Virus record (IMG/VR): IMGVR_UViG_3300021959_006010
Location: 1-64,000 of that record
Reading direction: 5' to 3' (one strand)
Length of the DNA stretch: 64,000 nt
Position numbers and translations under genes: made by a program. The notes under the pieces are model-generated. The model saw nothing but the letters and a program-made list of their open reading frames with translations. It ran no database searches and was not told where the DNA came from. Shown here one piece after another: positions 15,829 to 64,000 of this stretch; position 1 is the first letter of the stretch, and the number at the start of each line of letters is the position of its first letter.

Positions 15829-16179
15829 ATGGACACAAAATTAGAAAAGGCTTTAGATTTTTCTAACTATATGGTTACACTTAATAACCAAAAAAGATTG
15901 ATACACGAACAATATTTGCAAGACTTAGTGCATTATTATAATGGTGGACAGTTTAGTGTAACTCAGCAATTAATAAGTTTTTGTCAAAGTCTTTGTGCAT
16001 TAGAGCAAGAAGACACAGTTCTAGTTGATGACAACAAACAACCTATTTTTGTAGAAGACTTGGAATCTTTTACAACTGATATTTTACATTTGTATGCAAA
16101 TGCTTCAAACTCTTATTTTTCAGAATATGACAAAATCCGTAAAAATAGAAGCGTTGAGGGCATTTTAAGTGATGACTAA
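15829..16179 (+). CDS. Hypothetical protein, first gene of the modification island
   Basis: 116-aa ORF with a strong SD directly after the sigma70 promoter. No recognisable motif. Confidence 0.75.
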   Translation: MDTKLEKALDFSNYMVTLNNQKRLIHEQYLQDLVHYYNGGQFSVTQQLISFCQSLCALEQEDTVLVDDNKQPIFVEDLESFTTDILHLYANASNSYFSEYDKIRKNRSVEGILSDD

Positions 16180-17029
16180 AGGCGTACTATTATTTGCTAG
16201 AAACAACAGTCAAGTTGATTATGTAAAGCAAGCATATTGGCTTGCTAAACGAGTAAGCAAGTATTTAAACTTGCCCACAACTTTAGTAACAGACGATGTT
16301 GGATATCTAGAATCAGCGTATCCTGATTACAATGATGTATTTGATAGTGTAGTTGCTCGCGAGTACACTACTAATTTTACATTAAAAAGGTATCATGACG
16401 GAACATTGGCTCAAAAACGTTTAGAATTTAAAAACGATACTAGGCCTTTAGCATATGATCTATCGCCTTACGACGAAACTCTTTTATTAGATACTGATGT
16501 TGTTATTGCAGACACAAACTTTTTAGAATGTTTTGAACAAAATAAAGATTTTTTAATATATAAAGATGCTTATGATTTAGCACAATATAGAGATTATAGC
16601 GAGTTTTGTTATATTTCAGATACAAGTGTAGACTTTTATTGGGCAACTTGTATATTTTTTAGAAAAACAGACGAAAATAAGATATTCTTTGACTTAGTTC
16701 AGCATATACAAGAAAATTGGCAACACTATAACAGTATTTTTCAAATAAACTCTTCTGTATATAGAAATGATCATGCTTTTAGTGTAGCAATACACATTAT
16801 GAATGGTTATCAAAGCGGAGATTTTGCAGGGAAAATGCCAGGAAAGCTTTTCTATACACTAGATAAAGACGAACTAGTTGAACTTAATGACAAAAACTTT
16901 ATGTTTCTTATAGAGAAAGAAAATCATTTAGGAGAATACACTGCTGTTAAGTTTAAACGAAACACAGTGCATGTAATGAATAAATTTAGTTTGAATAGAA
17001 TAATAGATAAGGAGTTAGCAGATGTCTAA
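16169..17029 (+). CDS. GT-A fold glycosyltransferase-like protein (GT8-like)
   Basis: SPYDETLLLDTD with a DxD motif, plus RNDHAFS and HVMNK. Paralogue of the next ORF. Confidence 0.65.
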   Translation: MMTKGVLLFARNNSQVDYVKQAYWLAKRVSKYLNLPTTLVTDDVGYLESAYPDYNDVFDSVVAREYTTNFTLKRYHDGTLAQKRLEFKNDTRPLAYDLSPYDETLLLDTDVVIADTNFLECFEQNKDFLIYKDAYDLAQYRDYSEFCYISDTSVDFYWATCIFFRKTDENKIFFDLVQHIQENWQHYNSIFQINSSVYRNDHAFSVAIHIMNGYQSGDFAGKMPGKLFYTLDKDELVELNDKNFMFLIEKENHLGEYTAVKFKRNTVHVMNKFSLNRIIDKELADV

Positions 17030-17858
17030 AGGCTTTGTAATGTTGGCTCAAAATTCTGAATACAACTATGTAGAACAAGCATGTTTAGCAGCAATGAGTT
17101 TGCATGCTACAAATACAGACTGTAAAATTTCTTTAATAACAAATGATGATGTTCCTAAAGAGTATATTTCTTTGTTTGACAAAATTATTGAAATACCTTG
17201 GACTGATCAAGCATCTGAGTCTGATTGGAAAGTTGAAAATAGATGGAAAATTTATCATGCTAGTCCGTATGATGAAACTATAGTTTTAGATACTGATGTT
17301 CTTGTATTACAAGATATTAGTAGTTGGTGGAAATTTCTTTCTAACTACGATTTGTATTTTACAAGCAAAGTCTACTCTTATAGAGACAAAGAAATAAACG
17401 ATACAACATATCGCAAAGCCTTTATAGCAAACAATCTTCCAAATTTGTATGTGGGATTCCATTACTTTAAAAAAGGAGAAAAGGCTCATCAGTTTTATAA
17501 AATGCTTGAACTAGTAATGAATAACTGGGAATTGTTTTACGGAACATATGTTAAGCATCATTATCCTAAACGCCCAAGTGTTGATGTTAGTGCAGCTATT
17601 GTAGCTAAAATTCTTGACTGTGACACAGAAGTTACTAATTCAATTGCTAAGTATCCAAGTTTTACACATATGAAGCCTGCTATTCAAGAATGGAAACATG
17701 TTCCGGACAAATGGCAAGAACGTGTTGGGACGTATCTTACAAAAGACTTAAAATTAGTAATAGGTAACCACCAACAAAAAGGTATCTTCCATTACACAGA
17801 AAAAGATTTTGTAACAGATGATATTTTAAATAGATATAAAGATTATATAGGAATTTAA
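17022..17858 (+). CDS. GT-A fold glycosyltransferase-like protein (GT8-like)
   Basis: SPYDETIVLDTD DxD motif, FTHMK and FHYTEK. SD AAGGAG upstream. Confidence 0.65.
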   Translation: MSKGFVMLAQNSEYNYVEQACLAAMSLHATNTDCKISLITNDDVPKEYISLFDKIIEIPWTDQASESDWKVENRWKIYHASPYDETIVLDTDVLVLQDISSWWKFLSNYDLYFTSKVYSYRDKEINDTTYRKAFIANNLPNLYVGFHYFKKGEKAHQFYKMLELVMNNWELFYGTYVKHHYPKRPSVDVSAAIVAKILDCDTEVTNSIAKYPSFTHMKPAIQEWKHVPDKWQERVGTYLTKDLKLVIGNHQQKGIFHYTEKDFVTDDILNRYKDYIGI

Positions 17859-18461
17859 ATGAGAGTAGAATTTCCACCTATAGTAAAAGTAGATACAAAT
17901 TATGCTGTAATTTTTAATCCAGATAATTTTTTAGTTACTGCTATTAAAAAGAACAGGGATATTCCTAAAGATGTTTCTTATCTAGAGACAACATTTGAAG
18001 ATGTTAGAGATATCATCGAAGGTAAAGAAACATTAAAGTCATGTAAAGTGGCATATGATATTAAAACAAAGCAATATCAATTAGTACGAAACAACATAGA
18101 ACAACCTGTATATACTGTTTCAGAACTAATTTATAAGATCCCAATTGAGGAAGAATCTGAGGCTGAAATACAAGTAATACAAGACATTGAAAATACTTGT
18201 TGGAAAATTTTTATGAGCGATGACCTTAGAACAAAGTTGACAAACGATGCAGTTAATGTTAATATAGATGTAAGTCTAAGTGTAACTGAAGAAAATAACC
18301 CTAATATTCTTTACCGAACATTAAAGTTTTCTTTGAAAGAGCTTATGCAGAAGTTTTACATTATTATAGACTTTAAACAAGAAAGAGAATTTAATGCAGA
18401 GCCGGTAAGTTTGTATACAATACAACGTTTTCAAACTTACTCTTACGAGGTTAAAAAATGA
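17859..18461 (+). CDS. Hypothetical protein
   Basis: 200-aa ORF abutting both neighbours. No recognisable motif. Confidence 0.7.
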   Translation: MRVEFPPIVKVDTNYAVIFNPDNFLVTAIKKNRDIPKDVSYLETTFEDVRDIIEGKETLKSCKVAYDIKTKQYQLVRNNIEQPVYTVSELIYKIPIEEESEAEIQVIQDIENTCWKIFMSDDLRTKLTNDAVNVNIDVSLSVTEENNPNILYRTLKFSLKELMQKFYIIIDFKQEREFNAEPVSLYTIQRFQTYSYEVKK

Positions 18462-19405
18462 GCGACAAATTTAAAATTTTAGATTATGATATCATTTATC
18501 TAAGTTACGACGAGCCAAACGCAGAAAAAAACTATGCAGATCTGTGTAGTAAAGTACCGTGGGCTAAACGTGTACACGGTGTAGAAGGATCAGATGCTGC
18601 ACACAAAGCATGTGCCGAATTATCAGAAACAGAACGATTTATTACGATCGACGGCGACAATATTGTAAACGCTAAGTTCTTGCATCAAGAATATGATCTT
18701 AACAATCACGAAGACGTACATTGGAATAGAGAAGTTGACTTTGATCAGTGCGTAGTAAGTTGGACTGCCCGTAATACTATTAACGGATTAATGTACGGCA
18801 ACGGTGGCATTAAATGTTGGCCTAAAGATAAAGTGCTTAACATGAAGACACACGAAAATGCTGATCCCGACAACGTACATGCACAAGTTGATTTTTGTTG
18901 GGATTTACAATACATACAAATGAATACTTGTTATAGTGAGATTATGAATAATTATACTCCGCATCAAGCTTGGCGTGCCGGATTCCGCGAAGGTGTTAAG
19001 ATGGCGCTAGATCGCGGCATTAAACCTAGCAAAGAAGAGTTTCTAGCAGGACATTGGAAAAACTTGCATAGACTATGGATCTGGCTAATGGTAGGTGCTG
19101 ATGTAGAAAACGGACGTTGGGCTATCTACGGTGCTCGTGAAGGCTTGTACAAAACAATGTGTACAGACTGGGACTTTGTAAATGTGCGTGACTTTGAATG
19201 GTTGAATACTTATTGGGATAGTAAAAACTTAGACGAAGTGGATATGGATAGCGAAACAGACGAACTTGGTGATAAACTTATACACGAGTTAGGTATTCCT
19301 ATTGCAGTAGATCCGTTAAATGCAGATCAGAGTGCATTCTTTAAAACAGTGTACCAAAATCCTAGCCGTAATCCTAAACAGCAATTTGTGGTTGCTCCTG
19401 AATGA
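18458..19405 (+). CDS. Glycosyltransferase-like protein (GT-A, DxD)
   Basis: YDIIYLSYDEPNA...VHGVEG..AAH...FITIDGD...YGNGGIK...AWRAGFRE. Homologous to the C-terminal domain of 40203..42173. Confidence 0.65.
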   Translation: MSDKFKILDYDIIYLSYDEPNAEKNYADLCSKVPWAKRVHGVEGSDAAHKACAELSETERFITIDGDNIVNAKFLHQEYDLNNHEDVHWNREVDFDQCVVSWTARNTINGLMYGNGGIKCWPKDKVLNMKTHENADPDNVHAQVDFCWDLQYIQMNTCYSEIMNNYTPHQAWRAGFREGVKMALDRGIKPSKEEFLAGHWKNLHRLWIWLMVGADVENGRWAIYGAREGLYKTMCTDWDFVNVRDFEWLNTYWDSKNLDEVDMDSETDELGDKLIHELGIPIAVDPLNADQSAFFKTVYQNPSRNPKQQFVVAPE

Positions 19406-20991
19406 AACTAAATGATATAAAATGGATCAGAGATAAAAATGGCGAATTAACTAGTGATCCGGTTAACGTTGAAAACGTTAACAAACTACTTAATTCGAAA
19501 GGTTGTGGATTTTGTCTTGCAAAATTTACACAAGTTACTATGCATCTTGGTACAGGACATATACATAGTTGCCACCATCCAAGGATGCATAAAATCTCTC
19601 TTGACGAGATACAAAACGATCATAGAGCATTGTTTAATACACAGCATTTAAAATATGCAAGAAAGCAAATGCTAAACAACGAAAAACCTCCTGAGTGCGA
19701 TTATTGCTGGCGTGTTGAAGCAGACGGTAATTTAAGTGATAGGAGTTTCAAGAGTAGCAAGATGTGGGCTCTTGAAAAGTATGACGATATTGTAGAATAT
19801 ACAGGCAATGAAAATATTGCTCCTAGTTATTTAGAAGTAAGTTTTTCTAATGTTTGTAATATGAGTTGTTTGTATTGCGGTCCAGAATTTAGTTCTAAAT
19901 GGGTAGAAGATTTAAAACAAAAAGGTCCAATAAAAGTTTTAGAAGGAACAGACCACGAAAGATGGGTACAAGGATGGCAGGACCTTGATACATTAAATAT
20001 ACCTAATAGAGAACACAATCCTTACATAGAAGCATTTTGGAAATGGTTCCCAGAAGTTTATCCTAATCTTGAAACTTACCGCATTACAGGCGGCGAGCCT
20101 TTAATGAGTAAAGAAACTTTTCGAAGCATGGATTGGCTTGCTGAAAATCCTAATCTAAAACTTGATTTTAGTATCAACACAAATCTAAGTGTACCGGATA
20201 AACTTTGGGATACGTTTATTGAAAAGCTTGTTAAGATTAAAGATAATACAGTTAAAGGAGTAACTGTATTTACAAGTGTTGAAGCATGGGGTAAACGTGC
20301 AGAGTATCTGCGTAGAGGTTTAGATTTTGAAGTATTTAAAAAACGTTATGAGCAACTTGCACAGTTAGGTAATGTTAAAGTTGTAATTATGGCTGCATAC
20401 AATGTTTTAAGTATTACAAGTTTTAAAGACTTGCTCGAATGGCAACTTGAAATGAAGAAAAAATACAATTACAATAGTGCAGTTCTTTGGTGGGAAGAAA
20501 ATACACCTTACAAGTTTAGAGAAGGACTTTCTAATGCAGAACTTAAAAAGAGATCACCGTCTCATATTTTGCCACTAGGTTTAGACATTCCCTATCTAAG
20601 ACATCCTCCGTTTTTGGATGCACAAATCTGCACCGACGAACTTACACAAGAATATATGATTCCTGCTATGGAATATATGGCACGTAATACTGTAGACAAC
20701 AAATGGGTTATGCATATGAGTTTTGAATTAAACGAAATGTATAAATTAAAACAAATTACAGATCACAAAATGAGTGTAACATATTCTGTGCATCCAGGCA
20801 CTGAAGATTATTTTAAAAAAATTACGCACCCTCGAGCAGAATTTTTTGATTTTATTAATGCAAAGGACAAAAGAGACGGAACAGACTTTTTAGAAGTATT
20901 TCCTGAAATGGAAGACTTTTATATGAAGTGCTACGAAGCAAAGCAAGAAGTAGAAAAAAGAAATTCAAAAAATGTTAGTACTGGCACATGA
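19402..20991 (+). CDS. Radical SAM protein with N-terminal twitch/SPASM-like domain
   Basis: CNMSCLYC (CxxxCxxC) and TGGEP. N-terminal FCLAKF...G....CHHP...CDYC. Confidence 0.9.
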   Translation: MKLNDIKWIRDKNGELTSDPVNVENVNKLLNSKGCGFCLAKFTQVTMHLGTGHIHSCHHPRMHKISLDEIQNDHRALFNTQHLKYARKQMLNNEKPPECDYCWRVEADGNLSDRSFKSSKMWALEKYDDIVEYTGNENIAPSYLEVSFSNVCNMSCLYCGPEFSSKWVEDLKQKGPIKVLEGTDHERWVQGWQDLDTLNIPNREHNPYIEAFWKWFPEVYPNLETYRITGGEPLMSKETFRSMDWLAENPNLKLDFSINTNLSVPDKLWDTFIEKLVKIKDNTVKGVTVFTSVEAWGKRAEYLRRGLDFEVFKKRYEQLAQLGNVKVVIMAAYNVLSITSFKDLLEWQLEMKKKYNYNSAVLWWEENTPYKFREGLSNAELKKRSPSHILPLGLDIPYLRHPPFLDAQICTDELTQEYMIPAMEYMARNTVDNKWVMHMSFELNEMYKLKQITDHKMSVTYSVHPGTEDYFKKITHPRAEFFDFINAKDKRDGTDFLEVFPEMEDFYMKCYEAKQEVEKRNSKNVSTGT

Positions 20992-22192
20992 TTGGGTTGG
21001 GCCAGAAGGAATATGGCCAAACGGACAAAATTTAGATTTCTACAGCAATCCTCGTTCTTACGAAAAGTCGTACTATTCTATTAGTAATATACATCCTTAC
21101 AATTTAGAAAGTTATAGACATCTTTTTACGTATTCTAAATTAGAATCTGTAATAGGTAATGTCTTTACTCGTAAACACATATCCGAATGCAAAGGAAAAT
21201 TTATATACGAGATAACACCTCTACTGAAACCTTATCAGTGGGCAGACAGAGCATTTGATAATGTTAGTAAATTAGCAATTACTAAACAGCAACAAGGAAT
21301 GTGTTTGTTTGTTATAAACGATATGAATGAAGGATACTCTAATGTAGAATATAATTTTTTTGATGCATTGCATAGACAAATAGAAAGGTATAATTTATTA
21401 CCTGAAAATGTTTTATATATTACAATGAACGCAGTTCTTGAACAGTTTTACAAAGAATGGTGTTTGTCTAATAATATTAACAAGCAAATAAGAATACATT
21501 CTGTTTTTATATTCGAAAACAAGTACAATACAGGAAGTATTACTAATTGTAGTAAGCATTACATTTGTCTAAACAGACAACCTAATCCTTATAGACAGTG
21601 TTTAGTATACGAACTTTGGTGTCGAGGCTTGTTAAAATATGGATATGTTAGTATGCCTGATCCTAGCATACCACTAGATGTTAGTTTTAATAAAGAAAAT
21701 CTAAAGTTATTTAATTTGGACGATTCAAGGTGGGACGAATTTATTTCAACGTTGCCGTACGAAGTTGACGGAAGAGATTTTACATCACAAAGTTGCGATT
21801 TAAATAGTATAAGTGATTTTTATAAAGATAGTGTTTATGCTATTATTTCTGAAAATACATATGGAGAACAAGACTGCATCAAATTTTCAGAAAAAACGTT
21901 TAATGCTTTTGACAATTATTGCATACCTCTTTATTTTTATAATGCAGGAATAGCTAAGGAGTTAAATAAAATTGGATACGTTGCTGACGACAGCATCGAT
22001 AGTGTTTCAAACTTACAAGAAAAATTTTATGCGTTTGTCAACAGGGTTGAAGATATTTGCAAAATTCCAATAGTTCAATTGAATAAGAATACTAGTAGTA
22101 CTAGAAGTAAAAATTTTAAAAATTTACAATTGAGAAGCAAAGACCGTAAAGATAGATATTTGGAGATGTTTAACGGATGGGAAGAATATTAG
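20972..22192 (+). CDS. Putative glycosyltransferase (GT10/GT-B-like, SEKT family)
   Basis: CLNRQP.PYR and IISEN...FSEKTF, reminiscent of the GT10 EN...TEK motif. Paralogues at 35866 and 43335. Confidence 0.5.
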   Translation: MLVLAHDWVGPEGIWPNGQNLDFYSNPRSYEKSYYSISNIHPYNLESYRHLFTYSKLESVIGNVFTRKHISECKGKFIYEITPLLKPYQWADRAFDNVSKLAITKQQQGMCLFVINDMNEGYSNVEYNFFDALHRQIERYNLLPENVLYITMNAVLEQFYKEWCLSNNINKQIRIHSVFIFENKYNTGSITNCSKHYICLNRQPNPYRQCLVYELWCRGLLKYGYVSMPDPSIPLDVSFNKENLKLFNLDDSRWDEFISTLPYEVDGRDFTSQSCDLNSISDFYKDSVYAIISENTYGEQDCIKFSEKTFNAFDNYCIPLYFYNAGIAKELNKIGYVADDSIDSVSNLQEKFYAFVNRVEDICKIPIVQLNKNTSSTRSKNFKNLQLRSKDRKDRYLEMFNGWEEY

Positions 22193-26180: not shown

Positions 26181-26192
26181 AAGTTGTATAAT
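26164..26192 (+). promoter_or_regulatory. Consensus sigma70 promoter
   Basis: TTGACA (26164-26169), 17 nt, TATAAT (26187-26192), upstream of 26209. Confidence 0.8.
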
Positions 26193-43125: not shown

Positions 43126-43333
43126 TCTAAGTATGAGAGAGTTGCAAACTGAAAGTGCTAGAGCACTAAGTACTATGCAAGCAACGAACAATAACATACA
43201 TCAATTTAACAAACGTGCTCACCATAATAGTCAAAATTGGTACAAGGCTGTAATTGAATGGTATGTAGAACAGTACGGTGGTTTACCTAGTAAAACAGGT
43301 CCAGGTAAAGATGTAAAGCTGGTATTAGAATAA
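43112..43333 (+). CDS. Small hypothetical protein
   Basis: 73-aa ORF filling the gap between coupled genes. GAGG upstream of a TTG start. Confidence 0.6.
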   Translation: MDINDLSMRELQTESARALSTMQATNNNIHQFNKRAHHNSQNWYKAVIEWYVEQYGGLPSKTGPGKDVKLVLE

Positions 43334-43334
43334 T

Positions 43335-54085: not shown

Positions 54086-54107
54086 ATATGTAACTAGGAG
54101 AAAAACG

Positions 54108-56286: not shown

Positions 56287-56287
56287 A

Positions 56288-57732: not shown

Positions 57733-57740
57733 GATATCTT

Positions 57741-58397
57741 ATGGATTGGCAAGAATTAATTAATAAAAGACATACAACATTTGCATGGGACGATTCAAAA
57801 GTTCCGAGTAGAAGTGTAATAGAAGAAGTATTTGAAGAAGCATATTTACATGTTCCTACAAAAAACTTAATGTATCCATACGAAGCAATAGCATATAGAA
57901 ACGATGATGACGAAATTCGAAAAGAGATAATGACAATATGTCATCGTAACAAAGATATGCCTGTTGAAACAGATCGAGGAAATCCACAAGTGTTAGCACC
58001 TTGGTTAATCGGATTTACTGGAAGATATACACAGGATTTAGAAAAAAGATACGAAAGAAGTTCTTATCGAGAAAGACCTATACAAAGAGACAGTGAGCAA
58101 ATGGAAATTGGAATGTGTGCTATGTTCTTTGCATATGCCTTTGCTAGTAGAGGCATACAAACAGGCTATTGCCAGAATATATTGAATAATCCTCTTAGAG
58201 GAGGAGAAATATTTGGTTTAGAACCTGGTAGGAAATTAAGATTTATAATGGGTGTAGGATACGGAAAAGATAGTGCAACAAGGCACGAATACTACGATCC
58301 GAGAGTAAATCAAAATAAGAGTATTCCTTATACTCCAGATCATGTTGGTGTAATTTATCCGAGACCGGATATAGAAAAGGTATTTAGAGTGCTGTAA
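57741..58397 (+). CDS. Nitroreductase-fold flavoprotein
   Basis: INKRHTTFAW, VPTKN, QVLAPWL, EIG......A...GIQTGYC and MGVGY. Confidence 0.65.
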   Translation: MDWQELINKRHTTFAWDDSKVPSRSVIEEVFEEAYLHVPTKNLMYPYEAIAYRNDDDEIRKEIMTICHRNKDMPVETDRGNPQVLAPWLIGFTGRYTQDLEKRYERSSYRERPIQRDSEQMEIGMCAMFFAYAFASRGIQTGYCQNILNNPLRGGEIFGLEPGRKLRFIMGVGYGKDSATRHEYYDPRVNQNKSIPYTPDHVGVIYPRPDIEKVFRVL

Positions 58398-58407: not shown

Positions 58408-59223
58408 CTAAGCAGCTACTAGTTCTTCTTCTTTGTCCCAGTATTGTTCGTCTGCTTCTAAAATTCCACCTTGACCTGTTACAACTACTACTAGATGTAC
58501 ACGGTCGATGTCGCTGTCATTCTTAACCCAGTGCTCGTACGCTTGATTTAAGAACCACACACTGCCGTCAGCTGGCATATGCTTCTCTACAGTACGTTTT
58601 TTTCCTTTGGTGCCTACAACAACGTCTTCGTGCGTAATTAACGGTATATGTATACGAACTGCTTTATCTGTGTTTATGTCAAGATGTGGTTTAATTTCTT
58701 CTCCTGCTTTAAGCACAGCATATCTTGTACGTGCAACATGGCCTACGTGTTCTTCAATCATGTCAAGAACTTCTGCTACATAACCTTTACAAAACTCGTT
58801 ACGTTTATCATACAATTTTTCGTCTGCAATAGGGGTGTAATCAGGATGGCTTGGGTCTGAAATCTTTTCCATACGTCTTGCAAATTTGCGAGGATCCATT
58901 CCTGTTTCCTCTAGTTTTTTAGCAAGATCTTTATTGTGATCATCTGGATTACCATTAAATTCGGTTAAACACAACATTTTATATGCTTCGCCGCCGTCCG
59001 CAACAAGTTTTCCTTCTCTTTCAGCTTTTTCTTCGTCTGTAAGAAAATATTCAAGAAGCACTCTTCGAACTACAAGTCCATCTTCAGTATTATTGCCGTA
59101 ACTTAATCCGTTATACATATCCCAATTGTCGTAACCCAATTCAAAAAATTCTTTACGCAAGCGATCGATATCTACCTTAAAATTAAGTTTTGCCATTAAT
59201 GGTAAGTGTTGTCTTTTAAGCAT
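58408..59223 (-). CDS. Aspartyl/asparaginyl beta-hydroxylase-like Fe(II)/2OG oxygenase
   Basis: IKPHLD, RIHIPLIT, DGSVWFLN..EHWV.N and RVHLV. Confidence 0.75.
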   Translation of the reverse strand: MLKRQHLPLMAKLNFKVDIDRLRKEFFELGYDNWDMYNGLSYGNNTEDGLVVRRVLLEYFLTDEEKAEREGKLVADGGEAYKMLCLTEFNGNPDDHNKDLAKKLEETGMDPRKFARRMEKISDPSHPDYTPIADEKLYDKRNEFCKGYVAEVLDMIEEHVGHVARTRYAVLKAGEEIKPHLDINTDKAVRIHIPLITHEDVVVGTKGKKRTVEKHMPADGSVWFLNQAYEHWVKNDSDIDRVHLVVVVTGQGGILEADEQYWDKEEELVAA

Positions 59224-59250
59224 GTTTAGTAACCTCTACTCTTTCTATGT

Positions 59251-59258
59251 GTATTTAT
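59251..59258 (-). promoter_or_regulatory. Putative T4-type late promoter (ATAAATAC)
   Basis: The minus strand reads AGATAAATACAC...GAGG...ATG upstream of 59223. Confidence 0.5.
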
Positions 59259-59265
59259 CTATTGG

Positions 59266-59820
59266 TTAATATGTGTGTGTTATTTCTTTAAATTTATGTT
59301 TTGATTCTATCATAAACATAATTGTTTTAGCACATTCTTTCGGATCCATTAATTGTGCTAGTACACGTTGCTGATCAGCAACTGGCCATTCGTCTATTCC
59401 TTGTCGAGCTAGTAAAGTATCAACATACCCTGGATTATACATCATGCTCTTAAATAAAGTTTCGTTATCGCTTATCCAAAAGCTATATGTTTCGAGAGAT
59501 TTTTTAGCAACATTATAATTTAATCTCGATAGAGGTCGACCTTTAAGGACGTCTTTATGCCATGTCCCAACATTAATAACTTTTTTTGAAGTATTAGTCC
59601 AGTTTTTGTGTGCGTACTTTAAGAGTTCTAACTGTCCAGTATAATGATACGCATTGTTAACGAGTACATCGTATTCTAAAACTTGCGAATAAACATCAGG
59701 ATTACTAATATCAAATCCAGTACTTTTACTTCCGCCAGTAACAGTATATCCTTTTTCTTTAGCAAGTTCGTAAATTGCTTTACCTATACCACTTGTGTGT
59801 CCGGTTATAAAAATACGCAT
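59266..59820 (-). CDS. Short-chain dehydrogenase/reductase
   Basis: ITGHTSGIG, LVNNA, YNVAK and PGYVDT. Confidence 0.85.
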   Translation of the reverse strand: MRIFITGHTSGIGKAIYELAKEKGYTVTGGSKSTGFDISNPDVYSQVLEYDVLVNNAYHYTGQLELLKYAHKNWTNTSKKVINVGTWHKDVLKGRPLSRLNYNVAKKSLETYSFWISDNETLFKSMMYNPGYVDTLLARQGIDEWPVADQQRVLAQLMDPKECAKTIMFMIESKHKFKEITHTY

Positions 59821-59830
59821 TAATATACCA

Positions 59831-60619
59831 TTATTTTACAAATGCATGTTTTATGATCCATCCAGTAGGATCAAGTTCGTATGGTCGTACCTTGTAATAG
59901 TACGCACTAGGATTTCCATGATGATTGTTATGTAATGCTTCTCCAAGTAATCCAAAACCAGTTAATGCATTAATAAGAAGACCATTACGTGTGTCATCGT
60001 TAGAATCATAGTTTCGGTATCCTATATTAGGAAATACTCCGTGACCGAATATATTATTAACTCCGAAGTTAAAGCGAATTAAAAATACCGGAATTAAGTA
60101 CGCATTTAATACAAATGTCCATCCGCCTATAATATACCATGCTACACAATATCCTAAAATAACAAACCAATACCAGTCATGCATAAATTTAACTGCTGGA
60201 TTTCTTAATTCTTTAACTACTGCTCGTGGTCGAATACGCTGAAAATGTTCTTTGTCTTGTAAACAAAAGAAACTTCTAAATATTCCGATAGCACTTGGTG
60301 CGATAGGATCGTGTTCGGTGTCGGCGTATGCATGATGTATTCTGTGTATATCTACCCACCATGCAATGCTACCTTGTGTACTTAATGTAGCAGTAAATGC
60401 TAAAAACCAATGACGCAATTTTCCTGTATTGAAGCTTTTATGACCGAAGTATCGATGCATTCCTGCACTACTGCCCATCATTGATACTAAAAATGTCCCA
60501 ATAATAAATGGCCATAATTCAAAGTACTGTGGCTGTAGAATTAAAAAAGGAGCACTTAACCAGCATAAACGCTGTACTCCGGCTAACAACCAAGTTCGAT
60601 GGAATGCTTTAATTGTCAT
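59831..60619 (-). CDS. Membrane-bound fatty-acid (delta-9-like) desaturase family protein
   Basis: Three His boxes (HRYFGH, HRIHH, HNNHH), hydrophobic segments and DPTGW. Confidence 0.85.
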   Translation of the reverse strand: MTIKAFHRTWLLAGVQRLCWLSAPFLILQPQYFELWPFIIGTFLVSMMGSSAGMHRYFGHKSFNTGKLRHWFLAFTATLSTQGSIAWWVDIHRIHHAYADTEHDPIAPSAIGIFRSFFCLQDKEHFQRIRPRAVVKELRNPAVKFMHDWYWFVILGYCVAWYIIGGWTFVLNAYLIPVFLIRFNFGVNNIFGHGVFPNIGYRNYDSNDDTRNGLLINALTGFGLLGEALHNNHHGNPSAYYYKVRPYELDPTGWIIKHAFVK

Positions 60620-61649
60620 TAAAATTCTCTTTCATAAAATTATTTAGCTCGTTGAGTTTGTTAGAATAAATGTCTGCATGTTCTTTTTGGAAATAAGGAT
60701 TATAGTTAGATACTTGAATGTTTTCATAGCCATGTTGTACACGGTATGCCAAACGTCCTTCTACATCACCTAAACGTCGATGGTTAGTAATACTATTATC
60801 AAAGAACAACCAATCGTTATTGTTTTCATACCAATGATCCCACATATAACGTTCAGTCATAAGTTCTTTGTTTAGACGATCAAATAGTGCATTGCTTTCT
60901 TCTTGACTCATGCCTACAATGCCGTCTACTGTATTAATACTATAGTGTAGACCTTTAATGCCGCCTGGGCTTTGTATAACCATAGGCAAATAACTTTCTA
61001 GCTCAGGATTCATATTGATACGCATCATTTCGTCTTGATCGCCTAGGTCTTTAACGTGTAGCATACCTGGCTTATGCCGATGGATGACAATCATATCATC
61101 TAGTTCGCTGCGGAAACTTTCGGAAATATCTTCATAGTAAGTAGCAGTTTGTAAAAATCCTGTACTAGAACCAATCATATTTTCTTGTCCTAATAGTGCA
61201 ACACCGGGTGCAAAAATATGATTGCCCGCCTCGTTACTGTGCCACTTTAGCTCGCCGTCTGGAAAAATACCTGTATAATCTCCACGCTTATCACGAATGT
61301 TTGTTACACGCTGCGTCCCCGAAGGACCTTTAGTTTTAAACCTCTGTTTAATTACATTAATATGTTCGGGTTTAATACTAGGATCGTTTTTAATTGCTTT
61401 ACTAATTACTTCTTTAGCCGGAACTCCAGGATAGTGACTGCAAATATTAAGCATACCACTATAGCGTAAAGGTCCCCATTTTGTGATATACTTAGTTACA
61501 TCTTTTGGAGAAACGTTACAATTACGAATAATTGTAACTAAGTTATCCATATGTATCTTACCAATTTCTAACCATTGGTCGTCGGTCATATTCTCAAAGT
61601 CTACATCGTCGATATAGACAGCATAATTATGTGGGTAAGATATTTTCAT
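60609..61649 (-). CDS. TauD/TfdA-family dioxygenase
   Basis: LKWHSNE, STGF...YEDISE, PMVIQSP and WLFFDN..TNHRR...R..YR. Confidence 0.75.
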   Translation of the reverse strand: MKISYPHNYAVYIDDVDFENMTDDQWLEIGKIHMDNLVTIIRNCNVSPKDVTKYITKWGPLRYSGMLNICSHYPGVPAKEVISKAIKNDPSIKPEHINVIKQRFKTKGPSGTQRVTNIRDKRGDYTGIFPDGELKWHSNEAGNHIFAPGVALLGQENMIGSSTGFLQTATYYEDISESFRSELDDMIVIHRHKPGMLHVKDLGDQDEMMRINMNPELESYLPMVIQSPGGIKGLHYSINTVDGIVGMSQEESNALFDRLNKELMTERYMWDHWYENNNDWLFFDNSITNHRRLGDVEGRLAYRVQHGYENIQVSNYNPYFQKEHADIYSNKLNELNNFMKENFNDN

Positions 61650-62223
61650 AGTTAAAGTCCCTTCGGTTATTGTATATTATGTACTGCCAGCATTCCGGAT
61701 CTGGTGGGTTAGGTGCTACTAAGCACGGTTCGTCTGATACTTTCCATTCTTCGTTAGTATAATTAGTTATCATCTCGGCTAATTGTCGAGTCCTTCTTCC
61801 GGATGTTTTCGTTTCTTCTCTACCGATAAAGAAATCGGTATATCCTAAGTTATTACAAAAATCTATCTGTTGTGTAATATGATCTATTGTATCTAAACGC
61901 ATGCCATCAGTGCCCTTACCAAAATTTTTCATTTTATACTTAGGTACAATGCAGTATCGAGTACACAAACGTATAATACCGTTATACATAGGTCGTGTCC
62001 AAGCTAAAGATGCAAGCACTGGTTCTTCGTCAACTGTTGTCACGGTATAACAAAGTGTATTATTTTTTAAGTTTTCGTCTATAACATAGTTAGGAGATCT
62101 TAACTGATCAGACTTTGCTACTTCTTTAAAAATGTAAATAATTTCTTCAGAAGGAACTTCTGTTGTAAAGGTATTAGAATTACCATCTAGCTTTTCGTAT
62201 AGTTTTAAAGGTTTGAATCTCAT
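61627..62223 (-). CDS. Hypothetical protein, possibly GNAT-fold
   Basis: IRLCTRYCIVPKY and LGY..FFIGRE loosely resemble GNAT motifs A/B. Confidence 0.4.
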   Translation of the reverse strand: MRFKPLKLYEKLDGNSNTFTTEVPSEEIIYIFKEVAKSDQLRSPNYVIDENLKNNTLCYTVTTVDEEPVLASLAWTRPMYNGIIRLCTRYCIVPKYKMKNFGKGTDGMRLDTIDHITQQIDFCNNLGYTDFFIGREETKTSGRRTRQLAEMITNYTNEEWKVSDEPCLVAPNPPDPECWQYIIYNNRRDFNYENILPT

Positions 62224-62936
62224 AATGTAAACTTGTTTGATTTTTGGAATAGTCTTTTTCTTGCTTTCAGTAAAATATTTTCGTCTGCTACTTTTAGTTC
62301 TAACGGAATTTTTTCTTTACGCACTGGTACTAATTGACACAGAGGAGTTCCTGCAGGAATAGTTACACGACCTTTTGTTGTGTGCCAAAACATATGTATA
62401 TTAAAGTCACTTTGAAATCCTTCGCATTTGCCAGGACATGCTGTAAATTTTGGATCGTCATCATAGTAGACAGGAAGGATTTGTAATTCATATCCTTTAG
62501 GAATATCAAAACTATAAGGTATAAACACTTTAAAAATATGATTATGATAATTTCCTGTAGGTATCTTCATTGGACCTTTATTTGTATCAAATGTAGTAAT
62601 TAACGGGTGTTTAAAATCTATAGTATCGAGAAACTCTTTTAGATTAGTTGGATAAAATATTTCAAATTTATCTCCGTCTGTTTCTATTGTAAAGTCATGC
62701 CAAGTAGTAGCTATGTAACCAGATTCCATTACATTACGCACACCTGGACACTTTGCTACACTAATAGTACTTGCTCTGCCGTCTGTGACCTTCTTGTATT
62801 TTTGAAACGCTGTAGCACACTGTTTGACCCATTTACGCTTATAATCGCGAGCCGGGTAAATAGGGTACTCGTCTGTAATAGCAGTTGCTTCGCTATAAAA
62901 TTTAACGCTAGGCTTTTTCAGAAAGGGTATATTCAT
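62220..62936 (-). CDS. Hypothetical protein with dUTPase-like beta-fold signature
   Basis: KCPG....GY, IPKGY and TIPAGTPLCQLVP. The catalytic dUTPase motifs are not evident. Confidence 0.45.
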   Translation of the reverse strand: MNIPFLKKPSVKFYSEATAITDEYPIYPARDYKRKWVKQCATAFQKYKKVTDGRASTISVAKCPGVRNVMESGYIATTWHDFTIETDGDKFEIFYPTNLKEFLDTIDFKHPLITTFDTNKGPMKIPTGNYHNHIFKVFIPYSFDIPKGYELQILPVYYDDDPKFTACPGKCEGFQSDFNIHMFWHTTKGRVTIPAGTPLCQLVPVRKEKIPLELKVADENILLKARKRLFQKSNKFTL

Positions 62937-63999
62937 AATCGTATGCTCTTAGTGATTTTCTAAACGGTGTTAATTTACGTCCTAGTTCGTCTTGTGCTTG
63001 CTCAAAATTTTCTGCAACATACATTAGTTCGTCTGCCCTAAACATTGTATGGAACCAGTAACGTATTGCTCCTGTGCTACGTATTTTACCCTCGACCATT
63101 GCTTCTCGCCAGTGTGTTCGATGTTCTTCCACACGAGCCTTCCAAAATGGCATTTTGTCTAAGTTGTCAAAAAACTCAAGTATTTCGGCACTTGGTTTTA
63201 AAATATCAGTTAACAATTTTGTGTTATTAAATGTATTCATCCACCAAGTATAATCGTACATTGTTAACAGATCTTCTGTGCTAAAACTAAAACAACTGTT
63301 TATAAGATCTTTTCTTACAATATTTGTTTTATCTTGTTTAGTATCAAAATCTTCAAATATTAAATCTCTGTTTCGGTGATAGAATTTATTTGATGTTTGA
63401 TAGATATTATCTCTGTATGCATATGCATGATGTACTTGTAGTTCGTAATCTTCTCTATGGTTTAACAAAAGCGGCATATTAGGAACTGCTTCTAATGCAT
63501 GGAACGCCTGTGTCTCAACACCATGTCCGAAATCTTTGTCTAGTGTGTATAACCAACTTTCAGGTGTTTCTCCCGGAAGACCGAGAATAAGTTCACTGTG
63601 ATAAGGAATGTTATTTTCTTTATAATAGTTGAGAAGATATTCTAGTTGTTCTGTTTTAATATTACTACGGTCATTATATGCAAGAGTTTTCTTACTCCAA
63701 CTTTGAATACCTAATTTTAATGGTGTCCAATGTCCGCTTTCTGCTGCAAAATTATCTTTAAAAAATATTTTACTAATTTCAGGTACATACTTAACACTAT
63801 TTTTAGCAGTGCCGCATAGACTAATAAACACATCATCACGCTTGTGATCACGCATATACTTTGTCATGTCTAGATCACGCTCATACATTCCCCAATTTGC
63901 ATCTATAATTTTAACACCAGTAATTGACTCGCTTTTTAAAAGTTTATCTATAGTCTGATAGTTTACATCGTTGTCATATTTGCTAACAACACTACCTGT
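62908..63999 (-). CDS. B12-type radical SAM protein, 5'-truncated by the window edge
   Basis: The frame is open to the edge (TGSVVSKYD...KIIDANWGMYERD). DANWG, GIQS and ELILGLPGETPESW align with 23064 and 37026. The CxxxCxxC motif would lie outside the window. Confidence 0.75.
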   Translation of the reverse strand, partial: TGSVVSKYDNDVNYQTIDKLLKSESITGVKIIDANWGMYERDLDMTKYMRDHKRDDVFISLCGTAKNSVKYVPEISKIFFKDNFAAESGHWTPLKLGIQSWSKKTLAYNDRSNIKTEQLEYLLNYYKENNIPYHSELILGLPGETPESWLYTLDKDFGHGVETQAFHALEAVPNMPLLLNHREDYELQVHHAYAYRDNIYQTSNKFYHRNRDLIFEDFDTKQDKTNIVRKDLINSCFSFSTEDLLTMYDYTWWMNTFNNTKLLTDILKPSAEILEFFDNLDKMPFWKARVEEHRTHWREAMVEGKIRSTGAIRYWFHTMFRADELMYVAENFEQAQDELGRKLTPFRKSLRAYDYEYTLSEKA

Positions 64000-64000
64000 A

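Follow-up and report, generated by a model that had tools for sequence, protein, structure and literature searches.

A roughly 49-kb block with 16 radical SAM enzymes and sugar-handling genes between the tail-fibre genes of an uncultured aquatic jumbo phage

Related phage gene clusters and origin of the contig

Phage gene sets with several radical SAM (rSAM) enzymes have precedents. The host-recognition clusters of pelagimyophages carry GT8 glycosyltransferases, UDP-glucose dehydrogenase and rSAM cassettes, and they diverge by adding rSAM cassettes (PMC7029224). The Campylobacter phages CP220 and CPt10 carry 11-12 rSAMs (PMC2853527). Here, we analyzed the first 64,000 nucleotides of the IMG/VR viral genome IMGVR_UViG_3300021959_006010 (the window), in which a sequence-only reading had pointed out a biosynthetic island of about 48 kb with 16 rSAM genes next to tail-fibre genes. 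That observation was confirmed by our analyses. The island has the same architecture as the pelagimyophage clusters, and these precedents lower its novelty. They also correct the statement, made in the sequence-only reading, that no characterised pathway like it was known. NCBIfam NF033640, the family matched by rSAMs of the island (see below), is a family without a known reaction.

We first verified that the contig belongs to a phage. The same sequence was assembled by different pipelines in five data sets and lies internal on a 260-kb contig. Its giant structural protein, baseplate-region protein and fibres are syntenic with gp181 to gp176 of Agrobacterium jumbo phage Atu_ph07. Phage structural genes flank the island on the left, and on the right comes a fibre-like gene followed, a few kb further on, by a 5'-3' exonuclease gene. 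GC content and strand skew are uniform across the junction at 15.8 kb, and the same junction with fibre genes was seen in dozens of viral contigs. Although clusters of rSAMs with an N-terminal twitch domain (N-twitch rSAMs) do exist in bacterial chromosomes, and some cassette-bearing contigs are binned into MAGs (loci L012, L013, and L057; L numbers designate the compared loci), a cellular or chimeric contig appears very unlikely. That the contig is not cellular and that the genes are clustered rather than scattered in related phages were conditions set beforehand, and both held.

Gene content of the island

A motif scan of the translated ORFs found exactly 15 complete ORFs with CxxxCxxC (Table 1). 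Pfam Radical_SAM matched all 15 with E-values from 8e-16 to 1.8e-4, eleven at or above the gathering score and four below it. The 16th, cut by the window end, is complete on ENA contig k141_831054 as a 553-aa B12-type rSAM with the motif CPFKCAYC. With about 1.5% Cys, a 400-aa protein is expected to carry about 0.001 such motifs, so chance is excluded. Ten of the rSAMs have an N-terminal twitch domain; six of these were scanned against NF033640 and all passed its cutoff. The island runs past the window to about contig position 65,216, roughly 49.4 kb in all. The genes are tightly packed, with 15 ATGA 4-nt overlaps and three 1-nt overlaps (TAATG), the first of which, at 9153, joins two structural genes upstream of the island.

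The companion genes were only in part confirmed. The sequence-only reading had listed seven GT-like genes, an NDP-sugar epimerase and dehydrogenase, a sulfotransferase-like gene, three SGNH-like genes, a methyltransferase, five Fe/2OG oxygenases and two nitroreductase folds. The epimerase, the dehydrogenase, the Asp/Asn hydroxylase family protein, TauD and one nitroreductase were solidly confirmed, the second nitroreductase being just below the cutoff, and one GT-A fold is solid. Five of the seven GT-like genes, the sulfotransferase-like gene, two of the three SGNH-like genes, the methyltransferase and three of the five Fe/2OG genes are only weakly supported, by short motifs seen by eye with no HMM or PDB sequence hit. 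An acyl-lipid desaturase, a PP-loop protein and three copies of an unknown-fold family had not been listed. No initiating transferase, flippase, polymerase or ligase was found among the window's ORFs, and none of the unannotated ORFs has a membrane segment. This fits a cytoplasmic acceptor, but it leaves any route to the host surface dependent on host machinery.

Table 1. Features of the window, with the supporting evidence (bits are scores against NF033640, cutoff 170, unless stated; loci are the 79 related viral loci)
Position	Strand	Feature	Evidence
272..8524	+	Giant virion structural protein, cut by the contig start (2750 aa listed)	phmmer E 6e-52 to Atu_ph07 gp180 "virion structural protein"; weak FG-GAP hit
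8539..9153	+	orf2, conserved structural or baseplate-region protein	phrog_11259 E 3e-72; 54-56% identity to Atu_ph07/Phosso, 44-45% to Rak2-like jumbo phages; 93 phage records in all
9153..14653	+	Three tail-fibre paralogues (9153-11246, 11248-13125, 13166-14653) with a shared N-terminal ~240 aa	Phage Tail Collar domain E 3e-13; Peptidase_G2 IMC domain; PHROG tail-fibre families; paralogy; homologous to Atu_ph07 gp176
14649..14664		Tandem TATAAATA preceding orf6	TATAAATA word is depleted elsewhere
14702..15775	+	orf6, Ser/Thr/Gly-rich fibre-like protein	Composition
15776..15804	+	Perfect sigma70-type promoter (TTGACA-17-TATAAT) that opens the island	Same position before orf7 homologues in L155 and L162
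15829..16179	+	orf7, small conserved protein, first gene of the cassette; not precursor-like	10 homologues in related loci; no Cys/Ser/Thr-rich core in their alignment
16169..17858	+	orf8 and orf9 (16169-17029, 17022-17858), paralogous candidate GT-A-like proteins with an invariant DxD	Paralogy; each in 62 of 79 loci; invariant D108/D110, H268, K272; a few weak Pfam hits among 85 pooled cassette-family members, not attributed to particular members (Mannosyl_trans3 in 3, Nucleotid_trans in 1); hhalign against E. coli WaaJ (GT8) not significant
17859..18461	+	orf10	No Pfam, NCBIfam or PHROG hit
18458..19405	+	orf11, GT-A-fold (GT2-like) glycosyltransferase candidate with a helical C-terminal domain; best-conserved non-rSAM cassette gene	67 of 79 loci; invariant DGDN; AF2 pLDDT 85; every top Foldseek PDB hit a GT-A or nucleotidyltransferase fold, best SunS/ThuS, E 1e-3, prob 0.96
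19402..20991	+	orf12, N-twitch rSAM	297 bits
20972..22192	+	orf13, "SEKT"-motif family (with orf27 and orf32); GT-like by motif only	Motif seen by eye; no HMM hit
22177..23067	+	NDP-sugar epimerase/dehydratase (SDR)	Pfam Epimerase E 9e-38
23064..24851	+	orf15, B12-type rSAM, methyltransferase-like	Radical_SAM E 1e-13; nearest NF033712 KedN5 family, 234 bits, below its cutoff of 700
24821..26180	+	orf16 (P-loop-like PRSGGT; sulfotransferase call unsupported) and orf17 (SGNH/GDSL-like)	orf16: no hit in Pfam, NCBIfam or PDB sequences; orf17: DUF6071 E 8e-6, Lipase_GDSL E 1.7e-4
26164..26192	+	Second perfect sigma70-type promoter	Conserved before the orf18 homologue in L171
26209..27261	+	orf18, cassette protein with a confident predicted fold that has no PDB match	54 of 79 loci; AF2 pLDDT 88, pTM 0.89; best PDB Foldseek E 0.48; BFVD hits only uncharacterised phage proteins, including Atu_ph07
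27263..28669	+	orf19, N-twitch rSAM	302 bits; this type in 76 of 79 loci
28666..29379	+	orf20, GDS-motif protein (SGNH-like by motif only)	Homologue in L009; absent from relative L171
29376..30590	+	orf21, N-twitch rSAM, best match to the family model	386 bits; more than 5,700 homologues at E<=1e-10
30587..31444	+	orf22, distant paralogue of orf18	hhalign probability 93.7%, E 1.8e-7
31416..32696	+	orf23, N-twitch rSAM	324 bits
32671..33531	+	orf24, distant paralogue of orf18	hhalign probability 91.5%, E 8.7e-7
33528..34697	+	orf25, N-twitch rSAM	314 bits; this type in 73 of 79 loci
34694..35869	+	orf26, rSAM with a C-terminal SPASM/twitch domain (paralogue orf34)	Pfam; only PDB sequence hit BlsE cytosylglucuronate decarboxylase, E 0.002
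35866..37029	+	orf27, "SEKT" family, often in several copies per cassette	50 of 79 loci; no Pfam or PDB hit even with a profile
37026..38912	+	orf28, B12-binding rSAM	B12-binding E 1.4e-12, Radical_SAM E 1.3e-10
38957..40183	+	UDP-glucose/GDP-mannose dehydrogenase family	Pfam N-terminal and central domains, E about 1e-17
40203..42173	+	orf30, four ~104-aa tandem repeats, the last an orf11-like GT-A domain	blastp to orf11 E 3e-21; weak Glyco_tranf_2_3 hit; repeats
42154..44635	+	orf31 (methyltransferase call unsupported), a 73-aa ORF at 43112-43333, orf32 ("SEKT" family), orf33	No family or PDB hits
44622..45701	+	orf34, rSAM with a C-terminal Cys cluster	Radical_SAM E 1.9e-7; 33% identical to orf26
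45710..46960	+	orf35, N-twitch rSAM	277 bits
46957..46985	+	Third perfect sigma70-type promoter	
47008..50748	+	Three N-twitch-type rSAMs (47008-48417, 48417-49538, 49504-50748)	Pfam Radical_SAM, plus N-terminal SPASM for orf36; align with the family keeping all cluster cysteines
50745..52953	+	orf39 (SGNH-like by motif), orf40 (HxD...H by motif), orf41 (PP-loop SGGADS plus C-terminal CxxCxxC)	
52905..54071	+	orf42, N-twitch-type rSAM	Radical_SAM E 2.7e-13, N-terminal SPASM; alignment with the family
54108..55172	+	Nitroreductase-like protein (borderline)	22.6 bits against its cutoff of 23.5
55066..56286	+	orf44, singleton rSAM	Radical_SAM E 8e-16; no paralogue in the window
56288..58397	+	orf45 and orf46 (Fe/2OG-like by HxD...H motif only) and nitroreductase orf47 (57741-58397)	
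58408..63888	-	Block, possibly a separate lipid/envelope module: Asp/Asn-hydroxylase family (58408-59223), short SDR-like protein, acyl-lipid desaturase (59831-60619), TauD (60609-61649), two unknowns, 3' part of the 16th (B12-type) rSAM (62908-63888); continues past the window with a second desaturase, then an Mtd_N fibre-like gene	Desaturase E 8e-18

Conservation of the cassette and of its rSAMs

To determine whether the island is unique, we compared it with 79 related viral loci. A cassette of 4-7 N-twitch rSAMs, three GT-like genes and a protein of unmatched predicted fold lies beside tail-fibre genes in about 60 of them, with the genes in one recurring order and an adjacent orf5-type fibre in 39 loci. 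Seventy-six of the 79 loci carry 4-7 rSAMs, most often five. A scan of IMG/VR returned at least 600 pattern matches, of which at least 591 were confirmed as relatives by tblastn. The cassette is shared by hundreds of uncultured phages. A relative at 78% identity keeps the gene order and differs by gene gains and losses. The 10 N-twitch copies of the window fall in 9 separate places in the tree, and the same subfamilies are shared by other phages and by a Bacteriovoracaceae chromosomal cluster, indicating old, non-redundant paralogues. All copies keep the CxxxCxxC motif and four twitch cysteines.

These comparisons also suggest that the 48 kb is probably not one pathway, as the sequence-only reading had assumed, but a conserved core cassette plus accreted genes. 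Only about the first half of the island matches the conserved cassette, while genes from about 42 kb onward have few or no homologues in the 79 viral loci. The rSAMs of the second half (orf36, orf38, and orf42 types) were seen as often or more often in the cellular loci, and in the tree orf36 and orf38 sit beside cellular copies. The minus-strand block resembles phage lipid genes (desaturases, an LpxO-type hydroxylase family). There are at least three separate promoters. One could go further and propose that there is no single product, the region being a hypervariable cargo bay that has collected unrelated modules (an rSAM cassette, sugar-nucleotide genes, Fe/2OG oxygenases, lipid desaturases and nitroreductases), with 16 rSAMs reached by accretion. 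We consider this stronger version possible but doubtful. The plus-strand genes are tightly overlapping and co-oriented for 42 kb, the rSAM subfamilies are co-inherited as a set, and the same enzyme types recur together in an independent Bdellovibrionales cluster (N-twitch rSAMs, a B12-rSAM, homologues of orf26, orf31 and orf45, and GT2 genes).

The three perfect sigma70-type promoters compare with 0.08 expected. The island appears to be transcribed from its own promoters rather than from the late-type word found before the fibre gene, which argues against simple co-expression with the fibres. The adjacency to fibres could also reflect conserved genome architecture or a permissive insertion site rather than function. 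Indeed, in Vibrio phage K566 the rSAM cluster lies among nucleotide and NAD metabolism genes instead. Host-type promoters would fit early or middle expression and could be in line with nucleotide or DNA hypermodification, such as glycosylation or radical tailoring of phage DNA to evade restriction. Orf41 has a QueC-like C-terminus, the rSAMs gave weak secondary hits to nucleotide-acting MoaA, viperin, QueE and NrdG, and a PTPS gene lies near the rSAM set in L009. Campylobacter phages that carry many rSAMs have modified DNA. However, the secondary hits are generic similarity within the rSAM core, the cassette sits in the fibre region rather than the replication module, and no base hydroxymethylase, DNA transglycosylase (DpdA/Tgt), nucleotide kinase or other hallmark was found within the 64-kb window of the 275-kb contig. 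We consider this role unlikely on present evidence.

Possible roles of the island

The proposal that the island builds a heavily tailored glycan or glycoconjugate, on the virion, the host surface or DNA, was only partly supported. Besides the NDP-sugar enzymes, the GT-A fold of orf11 and BlsE as the only PDB relative of orf26, a link to sugars comes from cellular loci. N-twitch rSAMs co-cluster with canonical GT2 genes in a Bdellovibrionales contig (L176), where they are interleaved with canonical GT2, an SDR and a B12-rSAM, and they lie next to a GT2 in Synechococcus and next to a PIG-L deacetylase in Eubacterium. On the other hand, rSAM sets of this family occur in phages and in a bacterial chromosome without any recognisable GT or NDP-sugar gene (L009, L010, and L175), and single-copy cellular homologues lie among unrelated housekeeping genes, so the link between the rSAMs and a glycan is an inference. 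No rSAM here has a characterised orthologue, and a profile of orf21 orthologues found nothing among PDB sequences.

Most characterised SPASM/twitch rSAMs mature peptides or proteins. A RiPP-like alternative is that the SPASM/twitch rSAMs of the island, with the orf18-family proteins as recognition partners, introduce cross-links, epimerisations or methylations into fibre proteins or a small precursor, and that the GT-A proteins then glycosylate that polypeptide, as in glycocins. The rSAMs had secondary NCBIfam hits to sactipeptide, ranthipeptide and other maturases, B12-rSAM plus an Asn/Asp hydroxylase recalls proteusin tailoring, and the best structural matches of orf11 are the peptide S-glycosyltransferases SunS/ThuS, over the full length including the helical C-terminal domain, although this match is weak (TM about 0.3). 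Small ORFs lie in the Bacteriovoracaceae cluster, and fibre genes are adjacent to the island. However, no precursor-like gene was found. Orf7 is a conserved, mostly helical protein without a Cys/Ser/Thr-rich or variable core, and the only other small ORF (73 aa) has no such features either. No RRE or leader-peptidase domain was detected in the window, the fibre proteins have essentially no cysteine, and NDP-sugar enzymes are better explained by glycan chemistry. Hence, we consider this alternative unlikely.

Overall, our analyses established the gene content, family membership, phage origin, conservation and synteny, old paralogy and promoters, whereas the substrate, the order of steps, the product and the acceptor are inferred. 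With moderate confidence, we favor a reading in which the NDP-sugar epimerase and the UDP-sugar 6-dehydrogenase would supply activated sugars. The N-twitch rSAMs, each a distinct conserved subfamily, together with the BlsE-like and B12-type rSAMs, would carry out successive radical steps such as dehydrogenation, epimerisation, decarboxylation and C-methylation. The GT-A-fold proteins (orf11 and the orf30 C-terminus, perhaps orf8/orf9) would do the transfer, and the orf18-family proteins, which sit next to rSAM genes, may be partners of the rSAMs. As acceptor, we weigh the host envelope glycan and the phage's own fibre or virion proteins about equally, and the minus-strand oxygenase/desaturase block is probably a separate lipid or envelope module. 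The island is an expanded version of a conserved accessory cassette carried by a widespread lineage of aquatic jumbo phages in the hypervariable tail-fibre ("host-recognition") region, and in this view it would encode a cytoplasmic, multi-step pathway that makes unusual, radically tailored sugars and transfers them to an acceptor involved in adsorption.

Radical SAM content of the island and its phage origin

First, we scanned all ORFs for the CxxxCxxC cluster-binding motif and found exactly 15 complete proteins carrying it between 19.4 and 56.3 kb. The Pfam model Radical_SAM (PF04055) matched every one of them, with E values from 8e-16 to 1.8e-4, although four ORFs scored below the gathering cutoff. 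The partial ORF at the window end is the C-terminal part of a 553-aa B12-type radical SAM (rSAM) protein, which is complete, with the motif CPFKCAYC, on another assembly of the same phage. Hence, the count made by the sequence-only reading, 15 complete rSAM genes plus one truncated, is correct and cannot be due to chance. An all-against-all comparison sorted the 16 proteins into four groups, namely ten with an N-terminal auxiliary-cluster domain (N-twitch rSAMs), three B12-type, two with a C-terminal SPASM/twitch region and one singleton. The genes are tightly packed, with 15 ATGA overlaps and three TAATG overlaps, and no tRNA gene was found in the window. A 73-aa ORF without recognisable features fills the only long non-coding gap of the island (209 nt according to the list of ORFs of at least 80 aa). 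Coordinates are compiled in the table below.

Then, we examined whether the contig is of phage origin. It is catalogued as an IMG/VR viral genome, and the window corresponds to the first 64 kb of a 275,366-bp JGI contig with identical coordinates. The same region was assembled in five data sets by different pipelines, lying internal on a 260-kb contig in one of them, and one protein is recorded on a contig of 346,714 bp. Upstream of the island lie a giant structural protein, a protein of phrog_11259 and three fibre paralogues with a Tail Collar domain and a Peptidase_G2 intramolecular-chaperone domain. These are homologous to, and in the same order as, gp180, gp177 and gp176 of Agrobacterium jumbo phage Atu_ph07, which follow its baseplate wedge gene. 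The three consecutive fibre genes share an N-terminal region of about 240 aa and differ in their C-terminal parts (Tail Collar, unknown, Peptidase_G2 chaperone), the pattern of exchangeable receptor-binding modules. Beyond the window, the island continues with the rest of the B12 rSAM gene and a second desaturase, followed by an Mtd_N fibre-like gene. GC content and skew do not change at the island border. A chimeric or cellular origin was rejected, and an assembly artefact is considered very unlikely. At the nucleotide level, a megablast of window positions 1-25000 against cultured phages found nothing.

Coordinates of the features in the window and in related loci
Location	Strand	Feature
9153-14653		Three consecutive fibre genes
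14649-14664		T4-type late-promoter word TATAAATA, in tandem right before the fibre-like orf6
15776-15804	coding	Perfect sigma70 consensus promoter
Starts 19402, 27263, 29376, 31416, 33528, 45710		N-twitch rSAM genes scanned against NF033640
26164-26192	coding	Perfect sigma70 consensus promoter
40168-40196		Sigma70-type site with one mismatch
40203-42173		orf30
43112-43333		73-aa ORF
46957-46985	coding	Perfect sigma70 consensus promoter
Starts 47008, 48417, 49504, 52905		N-twitch rSAM genes assigned by alignment only
52252-52953		orf41
57678-57685		T4-type late-promoter word TATAAATA
58408-63888, continuing to about contig position 65,216 (L005 7721-10029)	minus	Oxygenase/desaturase block at the end of the island
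62908-63888	minus	C-terminal part of the 16th (B12-type) rSAM
L175 (Bacteriovoracaceae MAG UBA6144) 6055-18051		Chromosomal N-twitch rSAM cluster
L176 (Bdellovibrionales contig) 1984-19156		Chromosomal N-twitch rSAM cluster
L010 (Tara contig) 11230-11556		IscA/HesB-type Fe-S assembly gene
L011 (Tara contig) 6117-6443		IscA/HesB-type Fe-S assembly gene
L009 (related locus) 21225 onward		IscA/HesB-type gene, about 3 kb beyond the rSAM region

Protein families encoded in the island

Six of the ten N-twitch rSAMs were scanned against NCBIfam and all exceeded the curated cutoff of NF033640, "twitch domain-containing radical SAM protein" (277 to 386 bits against 170). In an alignment of all ten paralogues, C9, C27, C73 and C76 were invariant, as were C126, C130 and C133 of the core motif, and Pfam placed SPASM at residues 9-99, before the rSAM core, in five of the ten (orf21, orf23, orf25, orf36 and orf42). 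The two rSAMs with a C-terminal SPASM/twitch region, orf26 and orf34, scored only 61 and 43 bits and are not members of NF033640. This family has no known reaction, a profile of orf21 orthologues found no PDB sequence, and our literature search found no paper on the family. The nearest NCBIfam model for the B12 enzymes was the KedN5 family of C-methyltransferases (NF033712), but their scores of 234 and 245 bits were far below its cutoff of 700. The B12-binding domain exceeded the Pfam cutoff only in orf28 (47.9 against 32.1), while orf15 scored 20.6, and these proteins are best described as B12-type rSAMs of undefined reaction. The only PDB sequence hit for orf26 was BlsE, a cytosylglucuronate decarboxylase (E 0.002).

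Among the other genes, solid assignments were obtained for an NDP-sugar epimerase/dehydratase, a UDP-Glc/GDP-Man dehydrogenase family protein, one clear and one borderline nitroreductase, an Asp/Asn-hydroxylase family protein, a TauD protein and an acyl-lipid desaturase. The expected product of the dehydrogenase (38957-40183) is UDP-GlcA. In contrast, about 22 ORFs had essentially no Pfam, NCBIfam or PHROG match. By eye they carry short motifs (DxD, "SEKT", PRSGGT, GDS, HxD...H and a PP-loop) that the sequence-only reading presumably picked up. Profile searches against PDB sequences for the orf8, orf11, orf18, orf21 and orf27 families gave no significant hits, and single-sequence searches for orf16, orf31, orf41 and orf44 gave nothing useful. 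Pooling weak Pfam hits over 85 cassette proteins revealed only faint GT-A signals, and none for the orf27 family. A GT10/fucosyltransferase-like assignment of orf13, orf27 and orf32 was not supported, since no Pfam hit was found in 27 family members, a profile found no PDB sequence and all 103 homologues are unannotated, leaving only an "E...SEKT" motif. For orf8 and orf9, the DxD and a C-terminal HxxxK are invariant. However, no Pfam GT8 hit was found, and an hhalign comparison of the orf8 profile (A5) with the GT8 member WaaJ of E. coli was not significant (probability 1.5%, E 0.033) although the DxD aligned in register, while the GT4 control WaaG gave E 0.35. The PP-loop protein orf41 combines an ATP-pyrophosphatase motif (SGGADS) with a C-terminal CETCWWC and has weak QueC and NAD-synthase hits, and it may be an adenylating or amidating enzyme.

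We predicted structures for two families. The orf11 family gave a confident model (pLDDT 85), for which all 50 top Foldseek PDB hits were GT-A or nucleotidyltransferase folds, led by the peptide S-glycosyltransferases SunS and ThuS, although the scores were modest (best E 1e-3, TM about 0.3). Its DGD motif is invariant, and Pfam Glyco_tranf_2_3 appeared only below threshold. The orf30 protein consists of four tandem repeats of about 104 aa (spacing 312, 309 and 408 nt), the last being the orf11-like predicted GT-A domain while the earlier ones look like degenerate copies of its N-terminal half. The orf18 family gave an equally confident model without any match in the PDB, and it matched only uncharacterised phage proteins, including one of Atu_ph07. 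As orf22 and orf24 are distant paralogues of orf18, the window has three copies, each upstream of an N-twitch rSAM.

We also searched for the hallmarks of other pathways. For a RiPP biosynthetic cluster, orf7 was rejected as a precursor after alignment, the 73-aa ORF is not precursor-like either, and no RRE or peptidase domain was found. A RiPP-like protein maturation system is thus regarded as unlikely, although an unknown recognition element, possibly the orf18 family, cannot be excluded. For an O-antigen or capsule cluster of the Wzx/Wzy or ABC type, no initiating phosphoglycosyl transferase, flippase, ABC transporter, polymerase or ligase was detected by Pfam or NCBIfam, and none of the unannotated ORFs had a hydrophobic segment. 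For DNA hypermodification, no base-modifying starter enzyme (dNMP hydroxymethylase, DpdA/Tgt or 5-hmdU kinase) was found within the window, which leaves out roughly 210 kb of the contig, and DNA or nucleotide modification is considered the least likely of the biological alternatives.

An expanded copy of a widespread phage cassette

The N-twitch rSAM orf21 has more than 5,700 homologues at E<=1e-10 in the protein collection. A scan of IMG/VR for close relatives with orf21 alone found only the contig itself, and the ten paralogues were too divergent to seed a scan, but an alignment of orthologues returned at least 600 pattern matches, of which tblastn confirmed 591 as relatives. In the 79 viral loci fetched, one gene order recurs: [orf2 structural] - fibre (orf5 type) - (orf6) - (orf7) - orf8 - orf9 - orf11 - rSAM - (orf27) - rSAM - rSAM - rSAM - (orf27) - rSAM - orf18 ... 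orf27 x2 - orf30. Of these 79 loci, orf8 was present in 62, orf9 in 62, orf11 in 67, orf18 in 54, the orf19-type rSAM in 76, the orf25-type rSAM in 73, orf27 in 50 and an adjacent orf5-type fibre in 39. Moreover, 76 of the 79 loci hold 4-7 rSAMs within about 21 kb, most often 5. The orf8 family alone has at least 4,500 unannotated cluster representatives, many on contigs of 330-360 kb.

A relative at 78% amino-acid identity has the gene order of the window, apart from two losses and two gains. In a tree of the N-twitch family, the ten copies of the window fall in nine separate places, and each cassette position is an old subfamily shared among phages and with a Bacteriovoracaceae cluster, indicating that the copies are anciently specialised and not recent duplicates. 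Homologues of genes beyond about 42 kb are rare in the other viral loci. The 16-rSAM state is thus a core cassette (15829-37029 in the window) plus lineage-specific additions. The minus-strand block at the end of the island, with an AspH/LpxO-family hydroxylase, a truncated SDR, two acyl-lipid desaturase-like proteins with His boxes, TauD and a B12-rSAM, resembles lipid or envelope remodelling and may be functionally separate from the cassette. That the whole region is a patchwork of unrelated modules is held to be unlikely, although less so than the other alternatives. In the Tara contigs L010 and L011, an IscA/HesB-type Fe-S assembly gene directly follows the rSAM pair, as if the phage supported cluster loading of its rSAMs.

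Cultured and cellular counterparts

Among 50,697 phage records, only Vibrio phages K566 and K567 carry N-twitch rSAMs. They have five copies (hmmsearch E 1e-29 to 1e-45, about 21% identity), which lie among nucleotide and NAD metabolism genes and not beside fibres, and no cassette GT-like genes were detected. Atu_ph07 has an rSAM cluster (gp164-gp172) at the syntenic position, after the baseplate wedge, giant structural protein, orf2 homologue and fibre. It comprises only three to four rSAMs, with C-terminal rather than N-terminal auxiliary-cluster domains, alternating with proteins of about 300 aa. Atu_ph07 also encodes a 300-aa protein of the predicted orf18 fold (BFVD E 1e-9), but no homologues of orf8, orf9, orf11 or orf27 were detected. 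Our literature search found no paper on rSAM genes in jumbo phages or on those of Atu_ph07.

Most cellular homologues are solitary and sit in unrelated contexts, such as a two-component system and YaaA in Reichenbachiella, a GT2 in Synechococcus, and PIG-L with a carrier protein in Eubacterium, which gave no consistent guide to function. However, Bdellovibrionota carry chromosomal clusters of the same subfamilies. The Bacteriovoracaceae MAG (L175) has eight N-twitch rSAMs in a row between ribosomal-protein genes and lgt, while the Bdellovibrionales contig (L176) interleaves them with canonical GT2 glycosyltransferases, an SDR and a B12-rSAM. The context is cellular (ribosomal protein genes, Obg, Lgt), without fibre genes or homologues of orf8, orf9, orf11 or orf18. 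These clusters imply transfer of the whole enzyme set between phages and predatory bacteria. In addition, complete viral cassettes with fibre genes sit on three contigs binned into bacterial MAGs, L012 and L013 (Haliscomenobacter) and L057 ("Rickettsiales" MAG MED657). They are probably mis-binned phage DNA, but they could hint at hosts (Saprospiraceae, or SAR11-like bacteria).

Transcription signals

Three perfect TTGACA-N17-TATAAT sites lie on the coding strand in intergenic gaps of the island, 17-25 nt before the start codons. Only 0.08 such sites are expected per window, and no shuffle out of 100 reached three. Equivalent sites precede the orf7 homologues in two distant loci (L155 and L162) and the orf18 homologue in the close relative L171. 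On the other hand, the T4-type late-promoter word TATAAATA is strongly depleted, with 3 copies against 13.9 expected in the window and 15 against about 109 expected on the plus strand of the related viral loci (L092-L170). Its tandem occurrence before orf6 hints at a T4-like late transcription system in this jumbo-phage lineage. Taken from sequence alone, these signals suggest that host-type RNA polymerase transcribes the island separately from the late fibre genes.

Proposed pathway and comparison with known systems

The best-supported reading is cytoplasmic production and transfer of radically tailored sugars. It is favoured by the activated-sugar enzymes and a predicted GT-A fold, the BlsE-like similarity in one rSAM pair, the independent co-clustering of the rSAM family with GT2 genes, and the location inside the fibre region, which matches the described pelagimyophage host-recognition clusters (PMC7029224). 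On the other hand, rSAM sets also occur without GT-like genes, most "GT" labels are unsupported and the chemistry of the rSAM family is unknown. The glycan interpretation of the sequence-only reading is therefore only partly supported. While the gene content, the phage origin and the conservation of the cassette rest directly on our analysis, the reactions, the product, its transfer, the acceptor and the separate transcription are inferred. The lack of any glycan export or assembly protein and the fibre genes on both sides favour virion proteins as acceptor, whereas the early-type promoters, the adjacent LpxO-family hydroxylase and desaturase genes and the published interpretation favour host-envelope remodelling.

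The island has the architecture of the host recognition clusters of pelagimyophages and cyanomyophages (Zaragoza-Solas et al., 2020, PMC7029224), that is a giant structural protein, then fibres, then GT, LPS-type and rSAM genes in a hypervariable block. Those clusters diverge gradually by adding cassettes, and an Asp/Asn beta-hydroxylase is also a core gene of those phages. However, they are T4-like phages of about 140-190 kb, while the phage studied here is at least 275 kb (up to about 347 kb in other assemblies) and its structural genes are closest to Atu_ph07 and Rak2-like jumbo phages. Given these nearest structural homologues, membership in the pelagimyophage lineage itself is unlikely. 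The paper did not dissect the rSAM cassettes, gave no count near 16 and proposed, without a test, host O-chain modification as the function. Exceptionally many rSAM genes are also found in the cultured Campylobacter phages CP220 and CPt10 (11 and 12; Timms et al., 2010, PMC2853527), partly in an exchangeable module of five. A tblastn search with orf21 found no match in them, and their rSAMs are scattered or in clusters with amidinotransferases, not next to fibres with GT-like genes.

Sugar-acting SPASM/twitch rSAMs (BlsE, BtrN, DesII-type chemistry) and B12-rSAM sugar C-methyltransferases (KedN5/GenK type) show that twitch-type and B12-type rSAMs can tailor sugars and sugar nucleotides, although the similarities are far below the family cutoffs. 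The auxiliary domain of the main family here is N-terminal, an arrangement for which we know of no characterised enzyme. In mycobacteriophages and giant viruses, virus-encoded glycosyltransferases close to structural genes decorate virion proteins in the cytoplasm (Freeman et al., 2023, as cited in PMC12801897). Those systems have a few GTs and no rSAM enzymes, and no glycosylation has been shown for the phage lineage studied here.

Phages with many rSAMs and hypervariable fibre-region islands with GT and rSAM cassettes were thus already described. What is new is the size (16 rSAMs, the largest count we are aware of in a phage), the recognition that the core is one conserved, very widespread cassette built on the N-twitch rSAM family, the associated unannotated families, including a predicted fold with no solved relative, the cassette's own promoters inferred from sequence, and the identification of cultured phages that carry small versions. 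A more far-reaching reading, which is not excluded but remains doubtful, is that the N-twitch subfamilies, together with the orf18-fold partner and the unannotated GT-like families, make up a previously unrecognised type of radical-enzyme pathway, widespread in aquatic jumbo phages of about 330-360 kb and shared with predatory Bdellovibrionota. Its product would be a new class of heavily C-H-functionalised glycan or glycoprotein decoration on phage fibres or on the infected cell surface that governs adsorption or superinfection exclusion.

The cassette poses a physiological puzzle, as a phage from oxic water invests in 16 oxygen-labile Fe-S enzymes next to oxygen-dependent oxygenases. Its chemistry and target are now testable because two cultured systems, Atu_ph07 and Vibrio phage K566/K567, carry small versions. 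If the cassette makes a defined product, it would be an abundant and entirely uncharacterised piece of phage biochemistry, given the thousands of metagenomic homologues of the N-twitch rSAM and its hundreds of copies in viral contigs. It would extend radical SAM chemistry to virus-encoded glycan or glycoprotein tailoring, and it would also address what the large "host-recognition" islands of marine and freshwater myophages actually do, change the virion or change the host surface.
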